Below are positions 9,985 through 38,205 of a DNA stretch of 64,000 nt, piece after piece. Position 1 is the stretch's first letter. Each line of letters begins with the position of its first letter. The notes below the pieces were generated by a model that ran no database searches, was not told the origin of the DNA, and saw only the letters and a program-made list of their open reading frames with translations. Both the position numbers and the translations under genes were made by a program. Source of the DNA: Leidyana gryllorum EB-2025a (Eukaryota > Protista > Apicomplexa); assembly GCA_048772705.1 (NCBI GenBank), contig JBLWGC010000109.1, positions 310,001 to 374,000 on the forward strand. The letters are read 5' to 3'.

Positions 9985-11931
9985 CTATACAACTGGAAGG
10001 CAGCACAGTGAGTTGCACCTCAGGGTGGTACTGAGACCCTTAGGTTGGCGATCCACTTCCTGGATGAACGCGCGGTCGTCTAAGAGAGTCTCCAAGTCGG
10101 GCAACCAGGTGAAGGCGCCACTCAAGCATACTCTCAAGGACTTGAGCCCCCAGCTCTCAAATAGATCGAAGCGTTTTGCCAATAGAGTGCGTATGTACCA
10201 TGGTGAGACACAGCCGCAGTCGCCAATCCACTGGCTTTTGATCGAGCAGGGCACGCTGCCCGGAGGTATGGCTGCCCGTAGTTTGTTATACCATTCGGTG
10301 TAAAAGCGCAGTTGCACTGGACTCATCCGTCCAAGAGTTCTGGAGATATAAACCGGCAGGTTGGCTCGCTTCACAAATGCTTTGATGGTCTTGTGGCGTT
10401 GTTTGCAAGTTCCACCATCTGCCTTGAACCTCTGAATCTGCTTGAGTGGAATCTTTGCTTCCAGTAACAGACGTTCCAAAGTTTCCTCAGTATATCTCCC
10501 GGATATCAATTCCAACAGACACTCCGTCCACGGCGGTTGGATCCATGGCAAGAAATCGATAGCCAGACGGAGTGTGTATCCGCAGGTATACTGCAGAGAC
10601 CACAAGTTCAGGTATAGCGACAAGAGCTGCGTCTCGCAGCACGACAGACCAACGACATTGGACTGGATAAATTTCACGTTGAAGTATCGTAAGAAGTCAA
10701 CAGATGTTTCGACCGTAGAACTGAAGATGCCCGACGCCCGTATAACCACCATCGGATCTCTCTGGAGCCACGCAGGTTTCCTTGGTGGCAATGGGACTTG
10801 ATCAAACTTGCGCGGTGTGTCCAATTGCAACACCACCACTCGGGCCGCCTCTAGTTTCACCACGTCTTCCGGGTCGCTCGGTGCGAGCAAAGTCTCTCCA
10901 AGGAGCACCGTAGGTACTGACTGCAGTGGCCACAGATACTGCTCCTCCGCATTCACAATTGGGGGGTCGCCATAGGGAACTGGGACCGCCCGAAGCCACT
11001 CTGGCACACCCACAAAATCTCTTCGATTCCGAAGCGCCTCCCAGCAACGTGAGCGATCGCTGGTGAGACTCTCGACCTCCAGCGGCTGGAGAAAACTGGT
11101 GATCTCTTTGGCGACCTCATCTGTCTGTACCAGTTGCAGCCACATCCGCACTTGGTCCAGCAACTCCCTACCACACCATAGTCGAGAGAGAGAGAGTCCT
11201 CCTCCCCCCACTCACCTTCCAGTCAAGTAACGCAGAGGCTGCATTGGTAAGAAGGTTGGCAGCATCACGGGGTGACCCTTCAAACGCCGTTCGCTCCACT
11301 CGGCGACTTTCTCACGGGTCCAATACGGAACAATGTGAACATAATTACGGGGCATATCGGAGCGCAAAGCAATGTGGTTGTACGGCAGCATGCGTGGCAG
11401 GCGATGTCTTGCCCGGCGAGTGAGCTCGTGATTTACCAGCCGTATATCACCAGCTTGGACAATCAAAGTCTTCAGGCGAGGTGCTTTGACCCTTATCGCC
11501 CAGTCAATTGGGATGGGCCCATTCCTTAGCTTATCCAAGGAACATTTGACAATGTTCAAATGTTCGAGATTTTCAGCAATGAGGACCCATCTGGTCAAAA
11601 AGTTGAAGCACAAAGTGCATTCCCTCAAGCGCGGCAATTCACGGCCCTTCATTGCCGACATGATGGTGGGCATATTGTATATTGTACCTTCTTTTACCAG
11701 CCTTATGCGATAAGCATTAGGTAGCGTTCGCTTCAACCAGCCGGACCACCAGAACTGGGTACTGACAAGACTGTATACCTTGTCACATAATTCGATGACG
11801 TTGCCGGCTATGTGACTCTCCAGACTCTGGCGAAGTGTGCGCGATACCCTACCGAATCTTGATACTTCCGACAGTGGGACGAAGGATAGAATTTGGCTCC
11901 ACAGCGCTGCTGTGGGGAAAATGGGATTCAT
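9985..11931 (-). CDS. F-box-like/LRR-like + conserved unknown C-terminal domain protein, array copy 1 (632 aa; exons 11931-11216, 11167-9985)
   Basis: F-box-like FPTAALWSQILSFVPLSEVSRFGRVSRTL; LRR-like LRECTL/APRLKTLIV; a 48-nt phase-2 intron GTGAG..TAG (11215-11168) joins the two listed ORFs; C-domain motifs PVPY, ELISGRYT, WYNKLRAAIP, SPWY, WG. Confidence 0.85.
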
Positions 11932-12072
11932 AAAAGCACATTTTTGTTCTCCTTCCGTCGGCAAACTGCCAGCCAGAAACGCAATAGTGCGTCCGACCAA
12001 CCACGCACACGCCCACGCACACACACACACACACACGAAGACAGGATGTCAGTCGTTGCAAGGCTCACACCA

Positions 12073-13934
12073 CTATGCGGTAGCGCACCTTAGGAGACGA
12101 CATATCTGTGCTTCATAGCGGTTTTTTACGAGGGGTACAGAGTAGTGCATGACTCCCCAAGCCAAAAGCTCCTCACGATCTGCTTGAGTCACAAGCTGGA
12201 GGTACCATGGCGAGGTATGGGGGCAGATTCCGACTACAGTATTTCCAGCGTCGGCGAAGTACGGCAATTTGGTGCTGGGCAGGGCCTTCCGAAGACGGTT
12301 GTACCACAGACTGAAAAAGTCGATCTCAACGGGGCCCATATATGACAAAGAGTTCAGACACCACTGAATGTTCATTTTCTGGACAGAACGGCCTATTCCT
12401 CGAATGAATGGCATCAGTTTCTTCGCTCTTCGCTCCGAGATGAGTCGGCGGAACTCTGAGGGTGAGGCGTCGGCCAATCTGAGGACCCGGTTTAGATTTT
12501 CATCGGTGAAGTCGCCAACGAGCATTTCATGGACCGATTGTCTCAGTGGTACAGGAGGAATGAACATAGCGTAGGGATGTAGACGGAGCGTATAGCCGTG
12601 CATCGCCTTGAGGGTCCATAGATTCAAATAGGCAACCACAAGCTGACCCGAACAGCGAGGAATGACTTGGACATTGACGAATTGAATGTTGTATGTTCGT
12701 ATCATGGGGAACCACGTCTGAAAACCCGCTTGCCACACAAAATCGGCAGTCAACGACACCAATGTCCCTTGAAGCCAAGTCGCGGGCTCACCCACAAGGT
12801 GAGCTGGGCCCTTCGCCTTTTGTGACTGTCGGATGGTGATGATAACACTTTTTGGCGGTTTATTTGGTCCTGCGCCCAACTCTGCGTGGATTTGGAAGGT
12901 CGGCAGGTCCACTCCAGCTTCATTCTCGAGAATATCCACTCGACTCGACCCCCATCTGTCAATGGCCTCGTCGGAATACGGAATCGGCACAATGATCGGC
13001 CACTCAGGGGCCCCATGGCGGAAGTCAGTGCACTCGCGGAGAGCTTCCCACCTGTGCGTGGCAGGCTGATGATCGAAATCCAATGCTGGGGCCATTATAT
13101 CCAGAATCTCGCGAGCAATTCTATTTGACATTCGGATCTGATACCAGGCCCGCGAGTGCTCATTCAGTGTTCTGGAGCGAAACAGAGCAGAATGTTCGAA
13201 AGAAGTTCCCAAGTCAATGAATGAATCTCTTACCCCCTCGATTCGGGACTCTCCGGCTCGAGATCGAGGATTTGAGGCAACTCATATGGCCCCTCGAAAC
13301 CCTCCTCACTCCAACCATTGGGTTTGATATTCCGATCAGAAGGCAGATATACCCATGTGTGTGGAAGGTCGGACCGTATGGCTATGGGGAACCAGAGAGT
13401 CACGCTGCCAGCTTCATGTTTCTTCTGGAAGTCGGCGACTAAGGGATGATCAATATGTTTCAATGTGGCCGGAAAAGCGATGAGAGTGTTCAGTTTAGGC
13501 GCATTTATTTTGAGATACTCTGTATTGGGTATATTCCGAAAACTTGATCTGGACAGATCCAATATCCGCAGGTTTGGGCACTCCAAGGTGTCTCCGACAA
13601 CCCATTTCGTACACACACAGCACTCCTGCAGACTCGTCCACTCACCAGAAGCCAAATTGAGTGAGTCGTTAATCGCTCCCTCCTCCATCTGCTCCTCTAA
13701 TATGACCAAACGACGTAGTTGAGGCTGCGATCTGAGCACCCATCCGTTCCACCATTTGAATTTTTCCAAAGCAATGCACGCCACAGTGGTCAGACAGATC
13801 TCAGTACCGTAAGTATACTCCCGAACTGCTCTCTGAAACACCTTTGAGACACGCGTAAACCGGTAAAGTTCCCTGGGCGGGATAAACGATAACACCTGAC
13901 CCCAAAGGAGGGCTGAAAAAACAGCAGTCTCCAT
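12073..13934 (-). CDS. F-box-like/LRR-like + unknown C-domain protein, copy 2 (599 aa; exons 13934-13234, 13171-12073)
   Basis: LLWGQVLSFIPPRELYRFTRVSKVF; a 62-nt phase-2 intron GTAAG..CAG (13233-13172) restores the frame; motifs PIPY, EMLVGDFT, WYNRLRKALP, GICPHTSPWY, WG. Confidence 0.85.
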
Positions 13935-13971
13935 GGAACCAATCGGCTCGTACAGCAAAAGAATTTGCGAG

Positions 13972-13975
13972 GACT

Positions 13976-14005
<30 letters not shown>
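13972..14005. repeat. (GACT)n microsatellite upstream of copy 2
   Basis: gactgactgactgactgactgactgact seen directly. Confidence 0.9.
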
Positions 14006-14006
<1 letters not shown>

Positions 14007-14078
14007 GCATCCTTTTTCAACTTTCATCCCTTTGGTTGCTGCATCGCAGCTCTAATTTGAGCCAGATCGGGGGTCCTG

Positions 14079-14141
14079 GTGTGTGTGTGTGTGTGTGTAT
14101 ATATGTGTATGTATGTGTGTGTATATGTGTGTGTATGTGTG

Positions 14142-14174
<33 letters not shown>

Positions 14175-14175
14175 A
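14079..14175. repeat. Compound (TG)n/(TA)n microsatellite between copies 2 and 3
   Basis: Seen directly. Confidence 0.95.
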
Positions 14176-14247
14176 GATATACCGGGCGCAGCCCCGTCTC
14201 AGATCATATTGCTCTGCTGCAACCCATTCCTCAGATGCTGACTATGG

Positions 14248-16229
14248 CTACAAAGTCGGGTGGGCACCAGAGGGCCCTATGTTATCCCACAATAGCTGAT
14301 TCGCATCTTCTCTAAACAACATTTCCTCTATTTGCGATGTGTAACGAGTGGGAACGAGCGGAATGTCCCAGCATTGTGTTCCCCACGCCCGCAGTTCCTC
14401 GAAGCTCCCACTGGTCAACCTCTCCAGGTACCAGGGAGACGTCACTGGACATACTCCAACACATATAGCCTCTGTGTATCGCCGGTCGCGTAGACACGGC
14501 AGTCGACAGGGGGGCAGGGCGGTGCGCAGATATTGATACCATTGACAAAACTTATTCATCTGACGGAGAGTTAAATTGTTTACACCGTCGAACTTCGCCG
14601 GGTACGTTGGCAGGTCCAGCAACGCGGACCTTAGAAGTTTCATGCGCTTCTCATGTTTGACCCGCGAGAAACACTTTTCAACCGCGGCCAAGGGCACTTG
14701 GAGATAGTTTGTCAACAAGCGTAGGGTGTCCGGTGTGTAACGTCCTGTTAGCAATTCGAACGCGCAACGACTCCAGGGATAGGGGTAATAGGTGACGGAA
14801 AGAACATACAGAACCACAGTGTGGTCAAATCGGCGCCACAGGGTGTACATATACAAATACAGAGCCCAAAGTAGTGTCGGAGTGCGAGGCAAAAGGGCGA
14901 ATTCAAGGTATCGCACCTTGAACTTCTTGATGACTTTGAACCAAGAATTTAGAAAAGACTCTTGCAGACTGAGCATACACATGGTCACGATACAGTCCTC
15001 TCTCCACCACACTGGCAGCTCAATGGCGTTATGTGAGCTGGAATACTCCAGATCTATTCGAACAACTTTAATTATATTGCCGATCTCCGCCTCTGTCCAA
15101 TGCTCAAGATCAACAGGCAGTCGGCCATTGTCTCCGACGCCCTCGCGCAATCTCCACAAATAACAGCTCTGCTCCTTAGTGTCGCTTCCTTTGAGAACAT
15201 CTTCGCCGCTGTACGGCGTGGGCATCACGTCAAGCCACTCCGGGAGACCAACGAAGTTCCTGCAGCTTACTGTGGCTGCCCAGGCGGACGACACGCCGTA
15301 AACTTGGTCGTATTCGGGCTCGTGAATTCGGACGGCATGCAATACATCCCGCGCGACTTGATTATCTTGCGCTATTCTCCACCAAATTCTCACCAGATCG
15401 AGCTGGCTAGAGAAATGTCTGCGTGACCGCGTGGCATCAAAAGGCTAGAACACGTGTTTGGGTGTGTGTGTCTTCAGGGAGACACGGATAACCACATTCT
15501 CATCAGGTGGCAGATGTTAACTCACTCAAAGTCGAGAGGTGCTGCTACCAATGGGAGCCTCAAGGGTAACTGATGCCTAGTTGTGCGTAAAGAAGGAGTG
15601 TTCGCTCGTGAAAGAAGCCAGTGATCAGCTTCCTGCGCTGAAGGAGTAGTGTTGTACAAGACAATGTAAGATGGGTCTGGCATGTCTGATCGCAGGGCAA
15701 TTCGGTGCCACTCCCCCTCTACAGCGACTAGCCGGCGCGGGGTGATGAGGGGATGACTCAAGTGCTTCGCCGCCTTCGGTTCCAGTATGCAAGTAGTCAA
15801 CAAAGGGGCATCAAGGTGGATGGTGGGGCCACGCTCCCAGCGAGACCAGTCCAGGTGCTTCAACTTGGGGAACTCAATGTCCAATGAATTAACTCCGAAA
15901 GCAGGGAGGCATTCCAAGCCACAGCTTTCCAGTTCCGCCATTCCTGATTCTTTCAGCAGTCTGACGGCGCAGCTACTGACATCGCACTTCATCCTCAGAC
16001 ATCGAACGAACGGAAGCGACCTCTTCAACCATCCATCGAACCACTCAGCATTCAAGAAAGGAACACTCCGTTGATCGATGAAATCGATCACCGTGGAAGT
16101 CACGAAGAGGCGTGCTGCCTCTCGCGCGCTCTTACAGCACCGACTGGCATACGCCAAGTCCTCAAATGGTACAAATGACAAGATTTGGCTCCACCTCGCC
16201 GCTGTCAAGAGTTTCTCAGGCTTCTTCAT
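14248..16229 (-). CDS. F-box-like/LRR-like + unknown C-domain protein, copy 3 (624 aa; exons 16229-15526, 15418-14248)
   Basis: ARWSQILSFVPFEDLAYASRCCK; 107-nt phase-2 intron GTGAG..CAG (15525-15419); motifs PTPY, ELLTGRYT, WYQYLRTALP, GVCPVTSPWY. Confidence 0.87.
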
Positions 16230-16543
16230 CAATCTGCGCTTTCCCTATCCCCATGAAAGTGTGTGCGGGATTGCAGAGTCGCTTTTGGGCTCCAGATTCC
16301 CCTCGCAGCTACGATTCGACGACACGCGTCACTCAGCCATCACCAGATTTGCCCCACTGCCATCACGAGGCGATCTGCTTTGAAACGATCGGCCGTTTAC
16401 GCTCTGGGGTGGTTGTATACTGGGGATGGATAGCCCGTCGGCCTCAATCAGCATTCCAAAAGCGGGACGCCTCGCTGTCTATCGAATCCCCTCAGGCCGC
16501 TGCCTTCTCAACCCTCTCCTTCCCTCGGAGACGATGCATTGTT

Positions 16544-18973
16544 TCACGTGTCGTCACTCCATGAACAGTCGGAGCTCTCACCGCCACTCGACATGTCCTC
16601 GGTGCACCCACCGCTATCACTGCTGCCGTCCAGGCCGAACCAGCTGTTGCCCTCCTCACTGCTATCAGCTGTACCCGAATCAGTGAGTTGGTCGCTCCGG
16701 CTATCGCTGTCGCTGGTCTCGTCACTGTCACCTGCGCGGTAGTGAGCACTTCGCTCCTCGTCACTACCCTCACTAAAGTCTTCCCAACTATCGACACTCG
16801 TCTTCTCGCTGGCCTCAGCACTGTCACCGCCGCTACAGATACTGTCGACTTCGAGGTCGTAAACGCTCCGCTCCTCGCCACTACTCTCACTCACGACTTC
16901 CCAACTATAGACACTCCCCTTCTCGCTGCTACCGATACTGTCGACGTGATAGCTGTACAGGCTTTCCCCTTCACTCCCGCTCTGAACTTCGCTATCTTCC
17001 ACACTGCCGTCATCGCTGCCCAACAGATAAGTGTAGTCACTTCCATAGCTTCCATCATTGTCGCTACGGAGCGCACTGACCGTTGTGGCGGGTCCATAAT
17101 TACTGCCGCTGCCGTAGAAGCTGTCATCCTCTTCCTCACTGTCGATGTCACTGTCGTAATGAAAGCCAGGGGTTGTGAGCTTAGATAGTCGCTCGTCCGT
17201 CCAGGTGCCATCTAACAATACATTAGAGAGGGTATAGGGCTCAGTTAAGGCAGTAAGAGGGATTTCGACGGTATGAAGGCCCCAATCGCGCAGCGATTGT
17301 ACCTCCCCTGTGGCAAACTGCTCCAGATACCACCGATCTGTGGCAAAACTTGGACCGATCTCAAATGCACTGCAGCATGGCAATCGGAGTGGGGGAAGGT
17401 CCGCTCGGAGTCGCTGGTACCACGCCGAAAAGCTCAGCAATTGATTGAGACCCAAGTGTCGTATGGCCAAAGGTTCCGCCGGGTGGTCTAGGTGTTTATC
17501 CCACACAACTCCTTGGATCACGACAGAGTCTACCTCTTTTCCGACCAGGCAGACATCCATCTGATCTTCACTGGCTTGGACGTACTTGAGCGCAGCTTCG
17601 AGCGTCGCTATATGGTATCTGCCGGTGAGCAATTCATACAAACATTCGCGGAAGGGGTCCGGGACATACGAGACACCGTGTGTGTACAATCGAACACAGT
17701 GTTTGTGCTTTCGGAAGAGGATCCAGAGGTGGAGATATGCGTTCAGAATGGCAGCTTTACTGGCTCCACAGATGTCAACCTCAATGACTTGCACATTGAA
17801 ATGGAGAATCGGAGGAAAGTAGTCTTGGAAAGATGCTTCAAAGATCGCCTTTGTGGACATGGTCACAATGCGACCTCCAATCCAGTTGGGGAGACCTCGA
17901 GCCCTTCGTCCGATCCAAGGATTTGTGCCAGAGATGGAAATGTTGATCACTCCTCGTCGGGAAACGAAATCGGTACTCGTTGGCATGAAAGAAGCAGTTC
18001 CGCCCTCCCATCTTTGCACTTCTTTCGGGTAATGGTACCCAGATTTAGGAGTCCAGCGATAGTACAGGGGATACTCAGTCGGAGGGTGGTAGGGTGTGGG
18101 CAGAACAGACAGGAAAGTGGGGATTCGAAGATCTCGCAGGTCGGTACAACTAGTCAGAGAATTCCAGCTGGAAGTGGGACCCATGACAGCCAAGCTGTCG
18201 GGGACTTCTACAATACGAAGGATCTCGTGAACGACCTGTTGCCCCTTCACCATGTCCCACCACCGCTTTAGCAAGGAGAGCCGAATCGGGGTGATTCGCA
18301 GGGGCAAAGTAGGGACTGATCCTTTGTCCCAATTCGCCATCCTGGTAAGTAGTCTTGACGTCATGCTGTCCTGCAAGATGACACATCGCAAATCTGACCC
18401 TTGCACGTGAACAGCAACACGATCCTGAGACATCACTTCGTCCTTCAGCCTCCATCTCTGCCGGAATCGCGAGCAAAGTGGATGATCGATCCTTTCGCTG
18501 TGTTCCGGTTCCATGATGAGCGTTGAGAGCTTGGGAGCTACAAGTTTGAGCTTCTTGCTGGGGCTCAAACTGGAGCGTGAGATGTCCAATCTGACGAGTT
18601 TGGGCCAATGTACTTCCATGTTATCGGACAGGACGTCTTCGCAGACGATATCCAAGATGCACTCTCTGAGCTCAGGAGCCCCATACTCAAGCAAAGCCTT
18701 CCAGCAGTCTTTCAGAGGTATTTGACGGAAGGAATTTACGAATCTAAGCCGTCGTGCAGATCGAAGGGAACGGCGGAACCATTCTTTCCACCAGAGAGCG
18801 TCGTCGTGAACAATGGGGCTGTGAGAGTCCAAATCAATGTCGGTGGAATACACATGGTTGAGGACTGCGCCTCGCGCTTCCCTCGACAGACTGGTCAGCC
18901 GTCGCAGCTCTTTCAGGGGTACGAATGACAGTATTTGAGCCCAAATGGGGGCCCCAAACCTGGAGACTATCAT
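16544..18973 (-). CDS. F-box-like/LRR-like + unknown C-domain protein, copy 4 (809 aa, intronless, long acidic Ser-rich tail)
   Basis: A single ORF holds both modules: PIWAQILSFVPLKELRRLTSLSR, LRECIL, APKLSTLI, PTPY, ELLTGRYH, WYQRLRADLP, RWY, WG. This confirms the fused architecture. Confidence 0.9.
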   Translation of the reverse strand: MIVSRFGAPIWAQILSFVPLKELRRLTSLSREARGAVLNHVYSTDIDLDSHSPIVHDDALWWKEWFRRSLRSARRLRFVNSFRQIPLKDCWKALLEYGAPELRECILDIVCEDVLSDNMEVHWPKLVRLDISRSSLSPSKKLKLVAPKLSTLIMEPEHSERIDHPLCSRFRQRWRLKDEVMSQDRVAVHVQGSDLRCVILQDSMTSRLLTRMANWDKGSVPTLPLRITPIRLSLLKRWWDMVKGQQVVHEILRIVEVPDSLAVMGPTSSWNSLTSCTDLRDLRIPTFLSVLPTPYHPPTEYPLYYRWTPKSGYHYPKEVQRWEGGTASFMPTSTDFVSRRGVINISISGTNPWIGRRARGLPNWIGGRIVTMSTKAIFEASFQDYFPPILHFNVQVIEVDICGASKAAILNAYLHLWILFRKHKHCVRLYTHGVSYVPDPFRECLYELLTGRYHIATLEAALKYVQASEDQMDVCLVGKEVDSVVIQGVVWDKHLDHPAEPLAIRHLGLNQLLSFSAWYQRLRADLPPLRLPCCSAFEIGPSFATDRWYLEQFATGEVQSLRDWGLHTVEIPLTALTEPYTLSNVLLDGTWTDERLSKLTTPGFHYDSDIDSEEEDDSFYGSGSNYGPATTVSALRSDNDGSYGSDYTYLLGSDDGSVEDSEVQSGSEGESLYSYHVDSIGSSEKGSVYSWEVVSESSGEERSVYDLEVDSICSGGDSAEASEKTSVDSWEDFSEGSDEERSAHYRAGDSDETSDSDSRSDQLTDSGTADSSEEGNSWFGLDGSSDSGGCTEDMSSGGESSDCSWSDDT
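16751..16928. repeat. Degenerate direct repeat, period 117 nt, encoding the acidic tail of copy 4
   Basis: CTTCCCAACTAT(C/A)GACACTC occurs at 16780 and 16897; protein SEKGSVYSWEVVSESSGEERSV vs SEKTSVDSWEDFSEGSDEERSA. Confidence 0.8.
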
Positions 18974-19027
18974 TGGCTATCGGTAGATCCTTAGTTTTTG
19001 ACTACTCAATTCAGTTTTGACCAGATT

Positions 19028-21054
19028 CTACCAGAATTCTGGCTCGAGAACGTCAGGTTCCCGGTGAGGCCGTCCTCCTATGACCTGCCACAATAGCTGA
19101 TTCGCATCTTCTCTGAACAACATCTTGTTTATTTGCGATGTGTAATCAGTGGGAGTAAGCGGAATCTCCCAGTAATGCGCTCCCCACGCCCGCAGTTCCT
19201 CGAATCTCCCACTGGTCAACCTCTCCAGGTACCAGGGAGACGTCACTGGACATATTCCCACCCATAAATTATCTGTGTATCGCTGGTCGCGTAAACACGG
19301 CAGTCGACAGGGGGGCAGGGCGCTGCGCAGATATTGATACCATTGACAATACTTTTTCAGCTGCCGGGGAGTCAAATTAGGACAACGCGCGATATACATC
19401 GGATACTTCGCCTTTTCCAGCAACATAGAGTTCAACCGGTCCATTCGCTCTTTCCGCTTGATAGTTAGAGACATACAATCCTCCATGTCTTGCAAAGGAA
19501 TTCGAACATGTTCCGTCAGGAGGCGTAGAGTGTCCCGTGTGTAACGTCCTGTTAGCAGTTCGAACGCGCAGTGACTCCAAGGATAGGGGTAATACGTTAC
19601 AGACAGAACGTACACAAGTACAGTGTGGTCGTACTTGTGCCACAGGGTGTACAAATAGACATACAGTGCCAAAAGAACTCGCGGATCGCAAGGCAAAGTG
19701 CCGGATTCAATGTATCGCACCTTGAACTTTCTGATGACCTTGAACCAATTGTGGAGTGCAGCCTGTCGCAGATTTTCAATACACACGGTCACGATACAGT
19801 CCTCCTTCCACCAGATCGGAAGATCAATTACGACTTCCGGAGTTGTGAATCGCAGATCGAGCCTTACGACTCGGAGTGAGCTGACCAGATCTTCCTCGGT
19901 CCAATCATCAATGTCAACAGGAAGTTTCATTTCATTGTCACCAACACCCTCGCTCAGCTTCCACACATAAGATCCTCTTCCCACCTTACTATCCTCACCG
20001 GGGACACCCTCGCCAGTGTAAGGTGTGGGCATAACATCGAGCCATTCCGGGAGGTCTCGGAAATCTGTGCTACTCGCCAAGGCCCACCAAGGTTCTGAAC
20101 ATGCCAGGACTTCGTCGTCCTCGCTACCATGGAGTTGGACGGTGTCTAACACCTCCCTGGCAATTTTAATGTCTTGAGCGACCCTCCACCAGACTTTTAC
20201 CAAGTCTATTTTATCGGAGAAATCTCTGCACCGAAAAAAGTCATTAGATTGTCAGAAGCCCGTGTTTGCAAGTGTGTGGTATCCGGGAGACACAGACGAC
20301 GATGGGTTGACCCACCGCACAGTCATTTTCATACCAAATATCCAGTTGATAGGATGACTTACTCGTAATCGCGGGCATAGTCAGTCAGTTGCAGCCTCAT
20401 GGGTAGTTCTACCCTCGTCAGTTGGGTGCCCTCAGGGGGTTCGAACAGCCATCTATTAAGTTCAATACGTGAGGGGGTAGCTTTAAGCAGCACAATGTAG
20501 CTTGGATCTGGCATGTCAGCCCGGATAGCAACCCGGTCCCACTCCTCCGGTACCGTTGCTAAGCGGCCCCTCGTGATGAGAGGATGTTTCAAATGTGGTA
20601 CAGCACGAGGTTCTAATATACATGTTCTCAGATTTGGGGCATGGAGGGTAATATTTTGACCCGCGAAGCCCCGGGACCAATCCAGATGTTCCAATTTCGG
20701 ACATCGTAAAAAGGCTGTCTCCTCAGTGAAGTGGGGAAGGAAAGTCATAGTACAAGTCCGCAATTCAGCCCCTTGTAAGAGCTTTGGTCCCCAGCCTTTG
20801 TAATCGTGATCCATCCTCAAAACCCGCGCGATCGGGATCGATCTCTTTAGCCATCCCCTGAACCACTCAGCGTCTTCGAACAGGACGGTCTGTTTGTCCA
20901 CAAAGTCGATCAGGGTGGAGGCCACAAAGGACCGGGCAGCATCTTTCGTGCTTCTACAACATAGTCTAGCAACCGCCAAGTCTTCAAATGGTAAGAACGA
21001 CAGGATTTGGCTCCATACAGCGGCTGTCCGCACACTATCGGCCGCTCTGTCCAT
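19028..21054 (-). CDS. F-box-like/LRR-like + unknown C-domain protein, copy 5 (629 aa; exons 21054-20363, 20225-19028); closest paralogue of copy 3
   Basis: AVWSQILSFLPFEDLAVARLCCR; 137-nt phase-2 intron GTAAG..CAG (20362-20226); C-terminal blocks near-identical to copy 3 (CPVTSPWYLERLTSG, MLFREDANQLLW). Confidence 0.87.
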
Positions 21055-22536
21055 GAGTCCGACTCTCTCACATGCACTCTGCGCGGACTTGCTTTATCTT
21101 GTGTATTGTCAAATGACCACCGCTAAACGGTTGTCTCCATATCCTGTTGGGGTCCAGTCTCCAAAAAGCCCAATACCGACATTTGACCGATTTCTATCAT
21201 CTCTAAGGTGCTCTTCAGCTGTCCCTCCCTTCTAATCTTCTTTACCTGACGCTACGGTGGGATCCTCTCGCAAAGCAGTAACCTACTTGACTGTTCGCTT
21301 ACGTAGAAGCTGTCAAGCCGAAGACAAAGAGGCAAAGAACAGAGATGTCGGCTCGCTCGTCTTTGGCTAATTGGGGGCCAACCACTATTCCGCCCGCAAC
21401 TCGCAACTGATGGAGGCTATCAGAGGGCTCTGTGCAGAAAGCGCGCCAAGCATCCACCTTGAACACGAGATCTCCACTGTCCGCCAAAAGTAGTCTCCTC
21501 AATGATCCTTAATCTCGAATACCACTCACCTGTCCAATAACAGCATCGGGTGTTTCGATGATCAGACTCGTCCGAAGCAGTTTCTTCCGCTTTTCAGTAT
21601 CGCAGGCTCGCAGACTGAAGTAATAGTGGCTTGTGGTCCGCCTCAAATACGAGCTGCAGAATACAATCGTCTGCGGCTAGAGGTAATTCAATTGACTCAT
21701 CGGATCTCACGCTCCATTCGGTTCGTTTCCACCCAATCCGTCCGCCACCATGTCTACTCATCATAGGAACTGTTCCAGCTGCGGGGATGTGGCTCTGCGC
21801 ATGGTAGTACAGAATGAATCCGCCAGAGCAGCGGCGGTCAACACACAAACGACGGGACAGACAGAGAAGGATCAACAAAAGACACAATAGTTCACTCCAA
21901 CAAAGCGCATTGCCTCATGACACGGATGGCGTGAGGACGGGATTCACATTTGGGTCGTGCTGGGGGACTGTGTCGCCACAAAGGTCATCTCTGGCTGAAA
22001 TGTCTGTGATGGGAGTCGGAGGAGAGGGAAGACACGAATTCGGGCGGATCAGCGATAGATGACACCCACATTTTATGAGTGCGCAATGACGAGTGAGATC
22101 CACAGGGTCCAGACAGATAGGGACACGTGTGCGTGTGTGCTTCCCGTGTCTCCGTGTGCGGTGCGAGAGTCAAGGTGTCTGTCATGAGTAACAATGGTTG
22201 CCGATGGGCGTAAAGGTATAAGGCACAATGCGAACTGGGAGTAAGTGGTTCTTGGGTCTTTGAGAATTTGAACGGCTTAGTCTTTAGATTACGTCAATAG
22301 GAGTGGACGAAAGTACATATAGGAATAGACATGCAATATCATAAGCGCATCCCTGAGTGATATAGATGATACGTGATTTCTAACTATCTAATAATGATGA
22401 GTTCCCGATTGCCAGCGGTGATAACGCCGCGCCAGATGACACGTACAAGCCGACTTTTCGGCTAGCTGCAAGCGTTGATGAGCAGTGGGCTTGAAGTGGC
22501 TTGGAACATATACTTTCCCAAAAGGATACGACAGCT

Positions 22537-25137
22537 TCAGGCCTTGGAAGACAAAGCTTTGCGGCTCAATTTGTAGAACGGGTTACGGTAGGAGCTCTTC
22601 TGGGTGCGTACGTCTGCGCCTGTAGTGAACTCTGACCAGTAGTTGTCGTTGACCGGCCGAGGGCACTTGGCAAAGAGGTCGAGGCCGAGAGAGGGGGTGG
22701 GGTTGGGGATCGGAAGAGTCTCGTATCCCCAGCCTCGGAGTTTGCTGAAGTTGCCATCGCGAAGTTGCTTCTGATACCAGGGCGAGCTGATAGGGCAGTT
22801 GAAACTTCGGATGCAGAGCAGACTGTGGTTGGGGAAGTGGAGTAAGCGATCGGTGGGCATATTGTCAATAACCTTCTGGTAGAACTTGCGGAAAGCTGCT
22901 TTGTGTCCGGCCGGGAGATCCTCAAGGCAGAGGCGAGAGGTTTCAGCCCATTGCATCTGGTAGGCGAGTGCGCGATGGAGGAATCCACGGAACTTAGGAT
23001 GGCGTTCCCGTCGGAGTTCTTCGAGCAGAGGGACGTCGCGGTGGTGGACCAATCGGAGCAATTTGTCGACGGCGAGGACACTGTGTCTGGCGGTGAACAG
23101 TTCATAGACGAAATCCGTCCAGGGCGCCGGAATGATGGGGATTCCCACGCATCCGACAACCGGGATGGTTGCGTTGGGGATGTCGATGTAGCATTGGTGG
23201 AATATCAAGTAGAGAGCCAGTAGCTGAGGGAGTTTCGGGGTGGAATACTTGAAGAAGAGAGAAACAATGTGGTGTTTGCTGATCAGTGAGTGCCAGTCAA
23301 CCTTCATGATCCAATCTTCGTAGTGATCGACAACGATAGTGGTGAGACAGCGCGGGTGCAGAGTATCCTTGAGGTTGAGCAGATAGAACAGGCCTTGCAT
23401 CGCCTCTTCATTCTGCACGTAGATCTCAACGGAATGTCCTTGCTGTTCATCGGGGTTCGGATCCACGAAGGGAGGGATCAAGCTCTCGCCGCCTTCAACG
23501 GCTTCCAATAGAGTGGGGGCTTCCCAGTACTCGCCAGCGCCCTCGGGGCGTTTTCCAGTGGAATACGGCATCGGAACAAATTCCAAGAAGCCGGGGAAGT
23601 CATCGATTTTCCGAGTGGTCGCCCATCGCGCCAATGGGATCTGCACCGGAGCAACCCGAGCTCTGCAAGCCTTCACCACCAGTTCCAAAGACTTTGGAAT
23701 TCCACCAGACAGATTGACCGACTTGTGAGCCTCCAGAACTTGTTCCAATTGGCGCACGCGATCCCTGATAAGATTGCTGAGTGGCGAGCCCCACAGAACA
23801 CACACGCGCGCACACACGAATTTGACTTACCCTTGATCCAGAGTCTTCTGGAGTGTAACAAATCGGGGGAAGTTAATGGGTCCCGAAACTGCAACAGCAG
23901 CTTTCGCGATGGTAGCCTTCTTTCCCATGAACTTCCGGGCGATGCGCTCTTTTAACCCTGCTCGCTTTTGGACTTTAGGCGCAATTGGGAAGGCGGGAGA
24001 CGAGCAATCCCTGTCTCGGAGATCCTGATCGGTCGGTGCAGTAGTGAGCAACATGCTGTCGTCGCCAATGATGTTCCCGGAAATAAGTCCGTCAGCTCTG
24101 GGCTGGTTATGATGGTCGCTGACTTTAGACATCTCAGCCAAGTTCCGCATGCTGAAGCCATGGAGTTCATCGGGCAAAGTCCGAGTTGTAAGTGGCTCAG
24201 CCATGGGTACAATAGCGCCAAATCGCCCGCCGTAGTTCTTTCCCTTGCGTTTGATGGCAACAGGCGGGGTACGGAGGTCCGCCGATCTCTCCGGAGTCAT
24301 AGCAACAAAGGAAGCACTGCCGACCACAGGTGTTACGGTGCCAGAGTTGCAGTTGGAAGGGAGGAAGTCCTTGTTAGCGGCTGAGGACAAGGCTTGAGAA
24401 AGAACGGCAGAGTCTCCGCGGCGCAGACGAAGGTCGGTGGAGCTTGAATCCCTCAACGGTGGGATAGTGACCATCTCCAAACCGGTTCTTGGGTTAATGG
24501 CGGTGAAATCGTCCAATAGGACGAGACCATACGGCACGTCGTATCCTACTATAATGCTTCGTGATGAAGTCGTGTCAATGAAGCGGGTCCCATAAGCTTC
24601 CCAGGCTTCGGTCATCAACGGATGCTTGAGCTTATGTACGTCACTCATACGAATGGCGATGGATCGAAGTTCAGGAGCGTCTACTTCCAGACAAAGATCT
24701 CCGAAGTGTACGTCAATTACATTGAGGTGAGTCAATTTAGGTGCCGAGAACTGAGTCAGCGGGCCAACATTTGTATTAAGGCTGATTGCCAGAATGGCGG
24801 TCTCCAATTGTTTGGGTCCAGCGTGCAAGAAGGTGCGGGCCATCGCGTCAACGTGGCAACCCTTCTCCCCAATGGCGTGAAGGACTTTGGTAGTGTGGGT
24901 CGAACGGTGCAAATAGAGAACAGACCACGGGTGGTGGAGTAGGATGTCAAGCTTGAAGTTGTTCAAGTAGAGGTGAGAAGCGCTCAAGTGGTTCTCCACC
25001 AAATCCTTCATCGTCTTGCTTACTGAGCGAAGGCGGCACAGCTCCTCAGGATGGCACCATTGAGTGATCAGAGACCACATCTGGTTCCCGATAGTAGTGG
25101 CAGATGCAGTAACAGCGGCTCCCATGATTCCCGACAT
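22537..25137 (-). CDS. F-box-like/LRR-like + unknown C-domain protein, copy 6 (848 aa; exons 25137-23831, 23776-22537; long linker insertion)
   Basis: QMWSLITQWCHPEELCRLRSVSK; APKLTHLNV/APELRSI/LKHPL; 54-nt phase-2 intron GTAAG..CAG (23830-23777); motifs PMPY, ELFTARHS, CPISSPWY, LRGWG. Confidence 0.82.
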
Positions 25138-25336
25138 TCTTGCCAATTGATCAACTGTTTCGTTGATAACTAACTCAAGAAGTGGCTTGTTGAAGAGAAC
25201 AAGTCGAAAGCTGAAAGCTCACGATTCTTACTCCACGATCTGCCGATCATTCTGTGTGCGAGAGACGACACACATGTCCCAATCCGTTGGGACCCATCTT
25301 GACACTCGCTGTCAATTATTTGCACACTTACATAGC

Positions 25337-26923
25337 TCAAATTGGCCCTAAAACACTCAGAAGATCTCCAAGTCGGATCTTCACATCTTCCCCACACACG
25401 ACATTCCATTTCTGGAGCTCCTCAAAGTTACGCTCCCGCAGCTGACGAATGTACCAAGACGAGTCTGTGTCACAAAACTCCAATCGGAACTGGGTGACTT
25501 GAAAGCTGGGATGTGGGGGCACCTCGATGCTGGACAATGCGCATCTCAACTCCCAATACCACACCTCGAACCGTCTCATCTCGTACATCCCCATTGTACA
25601 GATTTGCTTCGACAACACATCGGCTTCCCGTGAAAAACGTCTGAGGACTGCGAGACTCTGTGCCATTGTGCTCCACGTGTCCACGTGACGGTACTTTTCG
25701 CTCTTCCGTCTTGCAACCCCAACGCAATGCAGAATAGAGGCTAGAGTACTGTCTGTGTATTTCCCCGTCAGCATTTCCTGGAAGGCAGTACTGTGAGGCG
25801 GGCGCAGAAGACCCATTCCAAGAGCACCTAACAGAATTTGACTTTGTGTTTTGACGCTAACTGATCTCAACAACAGATAGGTTTGAACTATCTCAGTACT
25901 TGTTGACAAGGGGCGCATCACAAGGAACCATCGTGGACGAGTTGTCTTTAGCAATTCTGACCAAGTCGCCCATTCATCGGGCAAATATATCTCATTGGTG
26001 ATCAGCAAGACCTTGTATTTGCCGAAAGAAAGGTTTGAGGATAAACGTAACTTCAGCAACAAGCCTCTGGCGTTGTCGTGACTCAGATTGCCTAATTGCA
26101 TCCATTCCCCGTTGACGTAGACTGGCAGTGGTTCGAGGGCTTTGAGCCTTTCCGTGCCGAGCCTCCAATTATCGCTGTGGCTCCCTGAACCCAAGTGGTC
26201 GTAAGGAACTGGAAGACGGGAGACCAAATCCGGAAGCTTCGCAAAGTCGTCGATTCGTGCCATGCTGTCGATCATTTGGTATACAACACGACGGCACTGG
26301 GACTTTGATACGATCAGTACGGTACTTTTCGCTCCGTAAGCTTGCTCGGCACCATTTCTGGGCATTGCAATTGGCTCGATGTCTGATCGCAATAAGTAAT
26401 GATCGATTTGACCTAATTGCTCTCGTTTCAGGACTATTCCTTGGACTGCTGGAGCCTCCAATAGAATTGCAGTTCCGGGTAGAGGCCGACCTCGTGCAGT
26501 CCCAATTTTGTAGTCTTCAAAAGCGCACTGGCTTATATCGATCAACACAAGACTTGGAGCACACCAGATCACAAACGGTCTTCCATCCTTTCGCTTCTTC
26601 AGACGGAAAGTCAATTACAGAATGGAATGCTGCAGCGCTGGCATACCACATTCAATCATTTTTAACAGAAACCAAGACACATTCGGCATATCACCCCCAT
26701 AGATTCTGAGGGATTTCACCACAGGCGCTGTGCGAATCATCCAGCTTCTCCACCAGCGCATGCGACGCAGCAGACCGTAGTGTTCTGTTTGTAATGCAAT
26801 ATGCTCAGTCACCAATTTATCATCAATATACTGTCGCACACGTTTGCAAACACGACTCAAATGCGGTATCTGATGTAGTGGCAGGAATGCCATTATGTGA
26901 AACCAACAGTCGCCGATCTCCAT
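25337..26923 (-). pseudogene. Array copy 7, probable pseudogene (in-frame TAA at 26617-26615 and an internal deletion)
   Basis: ORFs 26615-27010 and 25337-26614 are in one frame, split by a single TAA at a site aligning to Gln in copy 8 (HSIL*LTF vs ECILQITF). The region between the LRR-like part and PVPY is about 75 aa shorter than in copy 8 and has no intron. Confidence 0.65.
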
Positions 26924-27016
26924 CCAGATCCACTCCTCAGCCCTCGTTTTGGCAGTAGCGGGAAAGTGATCAGTAAGTACACTGACACGCGAAAATTCCG
27001 GCTCGCTCACACCAAG

Positions 27017-27428
27017 ATGGCAGGCGGAATTGAGGCGGTTCTAAACTCAAGCCAAACGGTAGGAAATCTTGTCGTCAAAGAAGCACTTAGATCCCTCGAT
27101 GCAGGGCATTCGGCAACGTACAGTTTGGTCGACCGAGAAAATCAAAGCGATGATACACGCCCTCTTTGAAACTTTATTCGCTCTCTATAAATTACAGGAA
27201 AAATATACCCAAGTATTTCTCGTCGGCATCGGCATTCCGCCCACAACACATATTTGGGGAGTCATTCCAGCTCTCCCCGATGGACAGCCTTCGAGCACAG
27301 TAAGAGGAACAGAGGGAAGGTTTGCCAATCATCGGGTCGTCACCACTTGTTTGTCGGCCACTCTGTGTCTCCAAGAAGACCCGCTCTCCGGCCCGCCACT
27401 GACCTGGATTCGTTCTCTGTCACTTTGA
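27017..27428 (+). CDS. Possible small spliced hypothetical gene on the opposite strand inside the array
   Basis: ATG at 27017; a phase-0 GTAGG..GCAG intron (27059-27104) joins to the 27069-27428 frame; 3' end unclear. Confidence 0.3.
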
Positions 27429-27853
27429 CATAACGATTGGGAGGTGCATTGTACCGCAGAGCAGTATCAACTTGGACCTCGGGCAATAAGCCACTCTGAC
27501 ATTACCGCTTCTACTATTAGTACAACCTCTCCCGCTTGTTGGGCACAGTGGGCTCTGGGTGACTCGAATACAGTCCAAGCTGATTATCTTGGAGGAACCG
27601 AGGAGGGAGTGTGGTGGAGATTCTTTCTCAGGCAGTCATTCAACCGCATTCTTCTGGGGCCTCTACGCCTCCAGGCGGCGTTTCGAAAACCACATACCCC
27701 ACATTATTGCCTTGAAGAGTGAATCTTCCACAGCACTTCCTCCAATACTCCCGGATATATCTAACTATATTAAGATGTTGATTCTGGGGCAGCAGGAGCC
27801 GACAGCAAGGGAGGGTTCACCTCGTCTGCTGATTATCTGCGGCGTTGTCAGGT

Positions 27854-30057
27854 TCAATAGGCGGGGAAGAGGGATGACAAGTGGGCAGGGTTGGGAATGA
27901 GGGATTGTTGCACTTTTGTGGTCACCGTTTCCTCCCTCTGTCGCCACTTCTCCTCCGCGATGCTCTCGAAACGCTGCTGTCCGTAGAGAGGAATGTATCG
28001 ACTTGGCTTCTGCCAGTCTCGATAGACCTTTCTACTGACAGCGATAGCATTATTATTGATCGGGGGAGGAGTCTTCCCTTCGAAGCAGAACACTCGTAAT
28101 AGATGCTCTAGGGTGGTTGAAGAGGAAGGGGTGGAGTTGAGGGGAATGTATATTTTCCGAATGCCCCATTGTTTGAGCAACGCGCAATTAGACTCCGAGA
28201 TCTGGCGCAAATACCACTTCGAAGTGGGAACGAAACCAACTTCGTAGGGGCTGTCCGCTAGTGGTTCAAAAGGCAGTTTAACAGACTCCAATGCAGACCT
28301 CAACTCGTTGTACCAGCGAGTGATCCAATTCAGCTCAAAAACACTCACTGAGTGCAAAAGCCGGAACGAGTATTGACACCAGTGGCGTAACTGATGCATC
28401 AGATAGTCAAGCTGTACAGCTTTCTGGGCGTAGCAAGTGTAGGACAAGTAAAGATTAATCTTGTCCTCATCGATTGCCATCTCACTGAAGATGGCCCGCA
28501 GACAACCGTCGCTGTATGTACCAGTCAATAGCTCCTCGAGAGCCGACCTCCACGGAGGGGGAAAGTAACAAGTTCCGTAACAGGACAATATGACAGATCC
28601 TTTGGTTTCAGACCACACGGAGTGAAGCAACAGATATGTTCTGAGCAATTGCTCAATTGTCTGCAACGACTGCTTCAGCAGCAGAAACTTGACTCCGATC
28701 TTGGATATCGCCTTTCGCCATACCACCCAAGACCGCGGAAAGACCTTGCTGTTGCTCATTAGAATCACCACACATGTGTCATTGTCCCACTCGACGTCGT
28801 ACTTCTCCAACAGGCTCAGCCTTCGCAAACACGAACTGCCCGTACAGTCCACTAGAATTGCAGTCCGCTCAAGACCGGCCAGGTCCATCGTCGAGTGCCC
28901 TCCCGGCGTCCACAAGCAGGTCTGTAGAGTACTGTCGATCTTGTCTTTGGTATACGGAATTGGCAGAATATCCACATCGGGTGGCAGATCTTGAAGGTCA
29001 GTCCATTCAGCAATGTGTTTCCAGGCTTCCGGTGAGTGGTTAACAGAATGAAACAGGGCGTTGTGCGTGGCCACCACTCGAACCAGATTCTTTGGTAGCC
29101 TTGCCTTGAATAGTTCCCATTGCTTAAGATGTAAACACAGTTGGTTGAAACGATCTCTGCGACAGAAAGAACACATCCACATCATGCCACCAGGGCACGC
29201 AAGGCGATGAAAAACATATCCATCATGACATGTGAATGCATAATATACATCACTTCATACGGCCAAGAATGTGCGGCGCACACTTACAAACGATTAGGTT
29301 TGGATATATCAAGAACCATACAGAGGGGCAAACATAGCGCTTTGCGTCTCGGACGAGAGTTTGACGCAATGCACAGATCATGTCGGCTCACTGGAACTTC
29401 ATTGACAAGTTCAACCCACCCCTGAACCTCCTGTCCCACAACGATAATTCTGCTGCGCATTGCTGATGGATTCCGTGAACTTCTGTACGCTTGTCTCAGT
29501 AAAGAGTGCCGTAGGCATCCAAGATTGACCCAGTCCACGATCACTGTTCTTAGCGATGGAGCATTCACAATCAGGTGAAGAATTCTCTCACCGCCTGCGA
29601 ATACACATCGCGAGACGTCCAGGTGCTTAAGCTTGCAAGCATCCAGCCGCATAGACTCTTCGCCCTCGTACATATCAAAAGTGATTTGCAGGATGCATTC
29701 GTGCAGACTCTTGAGACCCAAAGCACATAGTCTCGCTAGAAATCTCCCCAAACGAAACCCAAACACTTCCCGCAGGATTAAGGTACGGATAAGTGGTGCT
29801 GAGCGCGTTACCCATCCGTCCCACCAATCCGTCTGACACAGAACAGCATACTGATCACTCTTCAGATCCACGTTGACCGAGTAATAATCATTATATAGGC
29901 AATTGCGCACAGCTCCGCAGACCCGACTGACTCGAGCGACTTCGTGTGGTGCCAAGAACACCAGAACAGCGCTCCATATCGAGGGGTCCACACTGGGATG
30001 GTCATAAAATGTCGCTTCGCTTTGCGCACCCTCGTGTTCGAACTTCACAGGCATCAT
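27854..30057 (-). CDS. F-box-like/LRR-like + unknown C-domain protein, copy 8 (690 aa; exons 30057-29288, 29156-27854)
   Basis: PSIWSAVLVFLAPHEVARVSRVC; LHECIL, LKHLDVSRC, APSLRTVI; 131-nt phase-2 intron GTAAG..CAG (29287-29157); motifs PIPY, ELLTGTYS, WYNELRSAL, SKWY, WG. Confidence 0.85.
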
Positions 30058-31332
30058 GAACGACGTCTAGCACATAGAGTGGCCAGAACTTTTGGTGCTG
30101 ACGCGGGCAAACACGCCACCCCTACCGACCTTTGTGGGACACGCACAGGCAAAGACCCCTACCCTCTTCCTCAAAACCTCAAGTTTACGCAGCCCATCAC
30201 AGAATCTCATTTCACACACATCTTGCCATTCATCACACGATCTATCCTTGCGGGTGCCGCCGTTCTCGCTAAAGAGAGGTGGCGACACTACCGACGTTTG
30301 ATTGTTGAGCGTACACCCACCCTTAAGATCCCAGTCGATTGTTACGTCGTGCTGGAAAGCACCCGTAGGTTAGAGCAGATACCCTTTCAACTCGGCGCTC
30401 CGATCGAAGGAGAGCAAAGGGCCCTTTTTGCGGGCACACGACAGAAACACCTTCGGTGGCCTGGAGTTTGGGCTTCCGTCATACGTGGAAACTGCCCAAG
30501 CAGGCGATTAACCACATGGCGTTGTGCAAACCCGTTGGGCACTAATGGCGGTGGGCTTCGAACAACGTACGGCTCAGAGAGCCTCCGCGAAATAATCATC
30601 ACTGTGGGCGACACCCCGCGTGTCCGATTTTCGAGACTACTTGGCTCATTTTTACCCAAAAGCTGCGACTTTATGTCATTGCCTTCTGTGTGATTCTGAT
30701 TGAAAGGTGGAAAGGGACAGATGACCCGTTTTCTGCTTAAAACAGACTCCGCACCGAGCGCTAACGATCTGACTGATAGATCTCAAATTGAAAGACGTGT
30801 TGATAGAGTGTGTAGAAGTTCATTCAACGCGAATTGCGACTTTATCCAAAGCTGCCCTGACAACGGGAACCGACTATTTGACTCAGTCATCAGCTGAAGC
30901 CGCCTGAGCCGTCCAGGCGACATGACGAGCGCAGAGGGACCCTACCGTGCGTAGACTCTTTTTGGTAGACCATAGACCATAAACGATATAGCTGGACTGA
31001 CTACCGCCGTTTCACCTCATTCCCCTCAATGGGATCTTACATCTCACCGCCCACCAGCAACTCGTCAATTTGTTCGTCAATGTCCCAAAAAGCCGTACAT
31101 AGCGGACATCTAAATCCCCATCGTTCAGTTTTGTTGTAGCCGAAAGGGCTCAGGTGAGAGAGGTACCACTCATCACTCAGCTCGGACTCCCCAGAAACCC
31201 TAAATCCTCATCGCAAGTCTGTTCAGCTCGTCAGAAGACTCACAGTTGACAGCATCAACCGTTGAATGTGTCCTCGATGAACCTGGGATATGTCGCTAAA
31301 TGAGTCAGATGAGTTCTGACCGTGTGTTCGTT

Positions 31333-32045: not shown

Positions 32046-32293
32046 GAGCGGCAACCAGCGAGGAGTAAGATGTGAGGAAGAAGATGATGGTGCTGTGAAA
32101 GTCGAATTATCGTCATAAAGGACAGGTCAGCATGACAGTTATTTCAATCGTTTGCGGTAAAATTCAAACAGGATCGTTGATAGGGGTCTCACCACCACAA
32201 AAAAGCCAAATGAATGGGTTTGGTGCGACTCACTCTCCATATTTCCTTCCGTTCTTGGCGGTTTGCGTATGGCCACGATCGTCCAGTGTCTGT

Positions 32294-33919
32294 TTAATTC
32301 TTCTTGTCGTTGGACTTGGAGCTCTTCTTAGATTTCTTGGAGGCGCCCTTAGAAACGTTGTCGGCGTGAAGAGGAGAACGGGCCGAGACAACATAGGTAG
32401 TTTGGTTGACGGTTTCAACCTGTGAGAGAGGAGCTGGTAGGGTAGTGGCAGCGACGGTGGTCTGATGCGTCTCCTCGTTAGTAGTGCGGATTTGCAAAGA
32501 GTTGGTCTGCCAGGCCTTCATAACAGCTGATTGGATGTCCACAGCGGTTTGAGAGTTGATATCGCCGGACTTCATGATTTGGGCAGCGAGGTTCTCGATC
32601 TCGCAGAGAGAAGCAGCGCTTTGAGTGAGGGCTCCGATCTGTCCGACGAAGGCAGTGCTCTTGAGTTTGAGATCCTCGCGAAGGAGTTCGGTGGCAACTG
32701 GGACTTCGATGAAGCGTGGGAGGTAAACTGGGTAGGTAGCCTTGGAATAGCGAGGTTTGATCTGAGGGAGGTGGTACTCGTGCACGACTTCGGCTTCGAC
32801 AGGGACGGGGATCTTGACTTCGACGTCGACGTTCTTCTCAACGATGACTTCCTGCGGCACGGGTTTGTCAACGTACTGAGGAACAGCCACCTGGCGAGTG
32901 ACGACTTTGTCAACCCACTCAACCTTTTCAACAACTTTCTCGACGGGAACATCGCGATAGGTAATCTCGGGGATGACGCGCGGGACCTCTTTGGTGACGA
33001 TCTTGGGGACCTCAATGACGCGTTCCTGGTGGACGACGACTGGTTTGTGGACAACTTTCTCCTGGACGACTCTCTCGGGGATCTCAACGATGCGCTCAAC
33101 CCACTCGATTTCAGGGATCTCAACGACCTTTTCGATGATAGTGGGTTTGGCGACTTCGACAATCTTTTCGCGGACCACCTTGACGTCGTCGATGACCTCC
33201 TCGTGTCTGACAGTCTCGGGAATGACGATAACTTTCTCGATGACTTCTTCACGAACGATCTTCTTGGGGATACGAATTTCGTGTTCCACGTAGCGCTCGG
33301 AGATGACGGACTGACGGGACTCGTCGACACGGCGAGTTTCCGAGACGAGGCGCTGAGCGCCGTACTCACGACCGACGACGCGGGAATCCTTGCGCATTTC
33401 TCCAGTAACAGTGGTCCACTCGCCAGTTGAGACCAACTCGGCCGCCGCGCCGGCACCGCCAGCCACAGTAGTGGTGGTGGTGGTAGTTGTAGTCGCTCCA
33501 CCAGCCGCGTTAGCGACAGTGGTGTACTGGGCCCCGCCAGATTGGAGGCTCAAGTTGCCGTGGTACTGGGCACCACTGGCCAAAGTGGCACCTCCTTCCA
33601 GGACCAAACCGCCCTGTTGATGATGGTGCTGACCAGCAATGTAGTGAGCCTCGGTGGCCACAGTGCCCAAGTTGTAAGCCGCGTTCACAGCCCCCTCCAT
33701 CAGCTTTTCAGTTGTAGTTGTGGTAGTCACCTGCTGCTGCGGCTCGCCAATAGTGTACGAGTTGAAGCCGTGGTGAGTAGTAGTGGTCGTCATAGCTCCG
33801 GCTCGGGAAGGCACCACCCAGCTCGGGACAGGGGAAGCCTCGCCAGACAGGTCGACCTGAGCGCCAAGAAGAGTAGAAGACGGGCGGGAAGTCTGAGAAG
33901 GACGACGGATGGCTTCCAT
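32294..33919 (-). CDS. Alveolin / inner-membrane-complex (IMC1-family, articulin-like) protein A
   Basis: Val/Pro/charged repeats EKIVEVAKP, EKVVEIPE, ERIVEIPE, ERVIEVPK, VPQYVDKPVP; Thr/Gly-rich N-terminus; ATG at 33919. Confidence 0.92.
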   Translation of the reverse strand: MEAIRRPSQTSRPSSTLLGAQVDLSGEASPVPSWVVPSRAGAMTTTTTHHGFNSYTIGEPQQQVTTTTTTEKLMEGAVNAAYNLGTVATEAHYIAGQHHHQQGGLVLEGGATLASGAQYHGNLSLQSGGAQYTTVANAAGGATTTTTTTTTVAGGAGAAAELVSTGEWTTVTGEMRKDSRVVGREYGAQRLVSETRRVDESRQSVISERYVEHEIRIPKKIVREEVIEKVIVIPETVRHEEVIDDVKVVREKIVEVAKPTIIEKVVEIPEIEWVERIVEIPERVVQEKVVHKPVVVHQERVIEVPKIVTKEVPRVIPEITYRDVPVEKVVEKVEWVDKVVTRQVAVPQYVDKPVPQEVIVEKNVDVEVKIPVPVEAEVVHEYHLPQIKPRYSKATYPVYLPRFIEVPVATELLREDLKLKSTAFVGQIGALTQSAASLCEIENLAAQIMKSGDINSQTAVDIQSAVMKAWQTNSLQIRTTNEETHQTTVAATTLPAPLSQVETVNQTTYVVSARSPLHADNVSKGASKKSKKSSKSNDKKN

Positions 33920-37921: not shown

Positions 37922-38205
37922 CTCGCTTAATTGAGTGAAAGCCTATAAGAAAAGATTAGATCAACCACACGCACTCTCCAACGACAACACTTACAAAAAA
38001 TGAAGTGAAGCTTTGAGATCTAAATAGAGGGGCGGTCGCTGCTTCCAAAAGACTAACTTCCTCGCCCACAAGACACCCCTCTGTGTGCAAACCTTCGGGA
38101 CATCCCATACATAATGACGCCGCCGATCACACTTTGTGTGGTCACCTGTAGCTGGTGGTGGTCGTGGTTCAGATTCCTTCCCTCGCTGCTGCTGCTGCTG
38201 CTATG

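Follow-up and report, generated by a model that had tools for sequence, protein, structure and literature searches.

The window analysed here is a 64,000-nucleotide (nt) stretch of contig JBLWGC010000109.1 (C109), part of a 15.5-Mb genome assembled in 237 contigs. At 9985-30057 it carries eight paralogous units, arranged head to tail and co-oriented on the minus strand as the original prediction had described, each encoding an F-box, a leucine-rich repeat (LRR) solenoid and a C-terminal domain (C-domain). Every unit combines an N-module of ~230-270 amino acids (aa) with a C-module of ~370 aa. Any two of the eight are 18-32% identical in the N-module and 15-30% in the C-module, except for units 3 and 5, the closest pair (53% and 59%, respectively). 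A search of the gaps in the array for a ninth unit found none.

9985-11931, minus strand: unit 1; exon 1 11931-11216 (F-box and LRR), phase-2 intron 11215-11168 (48 nt), exon 2 11167-9985 (C-domain); 632 aa.
12073-13934, minus strand: unit 2; exon 1 13934-13234, intron 13233-13172 (62 nt), exon 2 13171-12073; 599 aa.
14248-16229, minus strand: unit 3; exon 1 16229-15526, intron 15525-15419 (107 nt), exon 2 15418-14248; 624 aa; F-box above the Pfam cut-off.
16544-18973, minus strand: unit 4; intronless open reading frame (ORF), 809 aa; F-box ~8-39, LRR solenoid ~45-200, C-domain ~229-600, tail 601-809 (209 aa, acidic, Ser/Asp/Glu/Gly).
19028-21054, minus strand: unit 5; exon 1 21054-20363, intron 20362-20226 (137 nt), exon 2 20225-19028; 629 aa; F-box 27.4 bits.
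22537-25137, minus strand: unit 6; exon 1 25137-23831, intron 23830-23777 (54 nt), exon 2 23776-22537; 848 aa; the most divergent of the eight, with an insertion of ~190 aa in the exon-1 linker.
25337-26923, minus strand: unit 7; no intron, linker region truncated, reading frame interrupted after 102 codons by an in-frame TAA (26615-26617); probably a pseudogene.
27854-30057, minus strand: unit 8; exon 1 30057-29288, intron 29287-29157 (131 nt), exon 2 29156-27854; 690 aa.

Units 1, 2, 3, 5, 6 and 8 share a single conserved phase-2 intron with GT(A/G)AG..AG ends, predicted from the sequence, whose removal gives the stop-free frames listed above; in unit 3, an alternative 119-nt acceptor is likewise frame-preserving. 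In all six, the in-frame stop that ends the exon-1 frame (TAA or TGA) lies inside the donor itself, and G·T(A/G)AG terminates 33 of 37 first exons across the family loci with sequence. At the boundary between the modules, reassigned or read-through stop codons were rejected in favour of an intron because of this donor, an in-frame acceptor close by (where sequence is available), intron lengths in all three frames and Skp1 introns of like size. Two separate genes per unit were also rejected, given the fused single-ORF members found in this genome and in its relatives. Retention of the boundary intron in two-exon copies would yield a clean F-box and LRR protein of ~240 aa.

In unit 7, the TAA falls within the LRR region, and the sequence downstream still matches the LRR profile. 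An intron spanning the stop was rejected, as the candidate acceptors are purine-rich and homologous coding sequence would be excised. As the stop lies among the LRRs with no plausible intron to cover it, and the linker and start of the C-domain are missing, the unit is probably a pseudogene. Thus the expectation that canonical splicing would give intact proteins of 599-848 aa held for seven units and failed for unit 7, while the shared motifs named in the original prediction recur in most units, with deviations in units 6-8.

Profile and model agree on the nature of the N-module. In database and profile searches, run per exon for two-exon units, PF00646 scored above its cut-off in units 3, 5, 6 and 7 and below threshold in units 1, 2 and 4; unit 8 gave no match, yet its F-box aligns with the family. 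Across the family, an F-box profile matched 25 of 29 members at E<=1. Unit 4, which is naturally intronless, served for full-length fold prediction and yielded a three-helix F-box (helices 8-15, 20-26 and 31-39; predicted local distance difference test score ~90) followed directly by an LRR solenoid of about six short repeats. The N-terminal half of the model resembles FBXL3, FBXL5 and Skp2, and the best structural matches, FBXL3 and FBXL5, align from residue 2-3. Matches to LRR_At5g56370 were weak and restricted to four N-modules. Both the F-box and the LRR assignments made from the letters alone are thereby confirmed. So is the lack of visible signal peptides: no signal peptide or membrane segment was found, the F-box begins within ~25 residues of the start, the top 19-residue hydropathy is <1.7, and the N-terminal hydrophobic signal of secreted F-box effectors is absent. 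The LP proline, which contacts Cul1, is typical of F-box proteins without being obligatory. At the aligned position it occurs in 0 of 29 copies, and it is retained in P0012, a long single-ORF relative.

The C-domain (~370 aa), modelled from exon 2 of unit 5, is predicted to be alpha/beta. It has no Pfam, PDB or clear fold match, only generic beta/alpha structural matches, and so is indeed an unrecognised conserved domain. None of 30 C-domains matched the Pfam domains FTH, FBA or FBD at E<=1. There was also no match to LRR profiles, and profile-profile comparison with the N-module (probability 0.2%) gave no support to a continuation of the LRRs, although the domain may yet be a degenerate solenoid. 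A TIM-barrel enzyme was rejected, as the domain does not combine a closed eight-stranded barrel with conserved catalytic residues, and an enzyme of any other kind was rejected for want of a conserved catalytic set. Word-based homologue searches with the C-domain returned nothing, and scans of metagenome and viral contigs, a viral fold library and a protein atlas yielded no relatives, which leaves a viral origin without support.

Because the window units are too divergent for codon tests, selection was assessed in young paralogues from other contigs of the genome (20 first exons and 10 second exons) with our own implementation of models M1a and M2a. The likelihood-ratio test statistic (LRT) was 55.1 for exon 1, with 5% of sites at omega (dN/dS) 4.7, and 60.5 for exon 2, with 4% of sites at omega 6.0. 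Two separate subgroups gave LRTs of 33.6 and 19.4, and neutral simulations on mosaic trees gave <=13.5 in 14 runs. The predicted dN/dS contrast between modules is borne out: the F-box alone is under purifying selection (LRT 0, omega 0.28), whereas the LRR region alone reaches an LRT of 34. Selected exon-1 sites (46, 48, 78, 80, 82 and 134) alternate with the leucines buried in the LRRs and thus map to the outward side of the first LRR strands and to the loops that follow; LRR geometry suggests that they face the concave side. Selected exon-2 sites form four patches in loops of the C-domain.

The copy count called for by the original prediction shows that the array is one part of a large family. 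Genome-wide profile searches returned 115 C-module and 119 N-module matches. Joining split matches by hand reduces these to ~105 loci distributed over 27 contigs. Most of the loci are clustered in tandem, and some of the clusters that are nearly identical may represent alleles. Internal stops occur in 13 of the 115 C-module matches. Sequence-level work was based on loci L001-L073. The genome encodes one Skp1 (C230:901522), with introns similar in size to those of the family, and two clear cullins plus a weak one. Alveolins (IMCp) and AP2 domains are present and DXP reductoisomerase (DXR), an apicoplast marker, has no match in the genome, a combination that fits an apicomplexan without an apicoplast; the apicomplexan-like host proposed earlier is therefore upheld, and it is probably a gregarine.

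Among 1.84 billion other representative proteins, the C-domain profile found 14 homologues, compared with 115 matches in this genome, which argues that the array is not a product of chance. All ten homologues that were looked up come from Logan assemblies, and nine were traced to four sequencing runs (ERR10900103, ERR10900105, ERR10900112 and SRR28734874). Both modules, the donor site, the tandem arrangement and the occurrence of fused forms recur in the relatives. On contig L066, from a close relative, the order alveolin, conserved element, F-box gene matches the window; the alveolins are 78-85% identical, versus at most ~30% for the F-box genes. In a quick tree, some subfamilies also contain sequences from the relatives, and five of the window units group in a clade of their own (Shimodaira-Hasegawa-like approximate LRT support 96). 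The shared subfamilies and locus order imply that the family is older than the species and has undergone both old and recent duplications. The earlier description of an old, diversified expansion is thus right for the divergent window copies and for a family that predates the species, but incomplete, as very young arrays are present too.

Several features of individual members deserve mention. In young 3.3-3.5-kb repeat units (L016, L025, L027, L015, L021 and L026), a fast-diverging ORF region of hydrophobic and coiled-coil-like character lies ~1.4-0.6 kb upstream of the F-box start and is possibly a co-amplified partner gene. One subfamily, which this genome shares with two relatives (26% identity over 600 aa), has a 460-540-aa extension N-terminal to the F-box (L031 at C177:71032, P0012, and L068 1628-4261), which has no Pfam match. 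Contigs L066-L070 (from ERR10900103 and ERR10900105) have SMART-seq primer at their ends, yet keep multiple genes and the boundary intron, and may represent genomic carry-over or unspliced transcripts.

We conclude that the family members are very probably Skp1-binding adaptors. On balance, we favour the view that they constitute a lineage-restricted, FBXL-type family of substrate receptors for Skp1-Cul1-F-box (SCF) ubiquitin ligases, evolving by birth and death, its tandem clusters including recent duplicates as well as disrupted copies, and in conflict with intracellular foreign or selfish proteins. Under this model, the F-box would dock on the single Skp1, the LRRs and C-domain would together form a variable grip on target proteins, and the targets would be ubiquitinated and then degraded in the parasite cytosol or nucleus. 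That the grip diversifies and the handle does not suggests fast-changing targets, which would most likely be encoded by intracellular viruses, retrotransposons or selfish elements of the toxin type. More tentatively, a gregarine-type apicomplexan lineage may have evolved, independently of others, an innate-immune (or antidote) repertoire that acts inside the cell and comprises ~100 proline-less F-box receptors, in which the undescribed C-terminal fold would serve as another variable binding module and ligases would assemble only upon target binding.

The lack of the canonical proline makes full SCF assembly less certain than assumed. FBXL3, the best structural match, reportedly assembles its SCF ligase upon substrate binding, which counts in favour of receptors that bind Skp1 and are poor in Cul1. 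These would sequester or relocalise their target, or build a ligase only after target binding, and the 100 paralogues would in this way avoid competing for one Cul1 or destroying themselves; loss of the proline, observed in every aligned copy, lowers the affinity for Cul1 and can make F-box proteins more stable (PMC3237615, PMC5029927). We regard such receptors as rather unlikely in place of SCF receptors, with which they are in any case compatible, and F-box proteins without the proline can still form ligases. An antidote or self/non-self repertoire, neutralising a cognate selfish toxin or recognising partners at gamont pairing, would account for the small, faster-diverging upstream ORF region in the repeat unit of young arrays C47, C202 and C136, and Caenorhabditis F-box antidotes have arisen by tandem duplication (10.64898/2026.01.07.698274). 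However, the partner ORF is a putative gene, and none lies between the eight units of the window or in the C36, C121, C133 and C173 arrays, which makes this explanation quite unlikely for the family.

The remaining alternatives differ in where the targets would be found. The F-box proteins so far investigated in apicomplexans regulate development (PMC6685633, PMC10006092), expanded nematode F-boxes are reported to show stage-specific expression (PMC8665587), and the old window paralogues have been kept intact, all of which would suit paralogues subfunctionalised for stage-specific, housekeeping degradation of the parasite's own proteins over its life cycle. Conserved self substrates, however, fit poorly with positive selection on the binding surface, fast turnover, broken copies and the ~30% identity of syntenic genes, and we assign this reading little probability. 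Positive selection would equally fit an arms race with the animal host, into whose cells effectors might be delivered to hijack the host SCF, as in Legionella, chlamydiae and large DNA viruses; F-box expansions are known in intracellular bacteria (PMC4209131). Since the proteins have no signal peptide or membrane segment and the parasite has its own Skp1, host-directed effectors seem highly improbable, and an SCF receptor family acting inside the parasite remains our preferred explanation.

Other features were recorded beside the array and elsewhere in the window and family:

33949-32297 and 32268-32132, minus strand: alveolin (IMCp) gene and conserved element; synteny marker shared with L066, outside the F-box family.
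36167-37942, minus strand: second alveolin (IMCp) gene, paralogous to that at 32297-33949.
30925-31046: 122-nt element, 84% identical to L027 1-114 (C47:212210); adjoins F-box genes at two unlinked loci.
31148-31215, minus strand: box C/D small nucleolar RNA-like stretch with C, D', C' and D boxes; Rfam matches sub-threshold only.
61858-63999, minus strand: protein with a C2 domain and a CEP76 peptidase-like domain.

The element at 32132-32268, just 3' of the alveolin stop, is non-coding and 90% identical over 142 nt to L066 822-961; it has no stable fold (z ~1) and is probably a conserved 3' untranslated region element. The 122-nt element has no Rfam match and no unusual fold. Directly upstream of a young F-box copy on C47 (near 4127), L019 3-707 (minus strand) encodes a 235-aa ORF that, by eye, is a candidate retrotransposon gag.

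Apicomplexans are said to have few F-box genes, and to our knowledge no repertoire for cell-autonomous defence has been reported from them; our literature search found no paper describing such an F-box expansion in this group. In Toxoplasma 18-19 F-box proteins are predicted (PMC6685633, PMC11570480) and in Plasmodium two (PMC10006092), so ~100 F-box receptors would be about five times the largest known apicomplexan set. By profile and structure, the closest known proteins are those of the FBXL class (FBXL3, FBXL5, Skp2, TIR1/COI1, Toxoplasma FBXL1/2 and Plasmodium FBXL2), which likewise place an N-terminal F-box before an LRR solenoid. Whereas LRRs form the rest of the protein in that class, here about six short repeats give way to the ~370-aa orphan domain, and the canonical proline is missing from ~100 unstable copies.

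The coupling of an F-box to a lineage-private domain of ~300 aa in families expanded by tandem birth and death recalls the Caenorhabditis F-box-FTH and F-box-FBA2 and plant F-box-FBD/FBA families. For the nematode families, Thomas reportedly described in 2006 a conserved F-box and a positively selected binding region, and the present family resembles them in its tandem birth and death, in the conservation of its F-box and in having a binding part under positive selection. An immunity role has been proposed for the Caenorhabditis FTH/FBA2 families (PMC8665587). The family differs in having no sequence match to FTH, FBA_2 or FBD and in having arisen independently, in an alveolate parasite whose genome measures 15.5 Mb. 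F-box antidotes (Cni-shls-2) and S-locus F-box genes also share young tandem duplicates and a variable binding surface, but most arrays here have no partner gene, and a cognate toxin would be an analogy only. The general pattern is therefore already known; the lineage, the C-domain and the proline loss are new. The family offers named residues, an undescribed domain for structure work and a natural test of the purpose of the F-box proline. If our explanation is correct, ~100 arms-race F-box receptors would mean that the pattern of conserved handle and variable grip arose independently once more, in addition to its origins in nematodes and plants.
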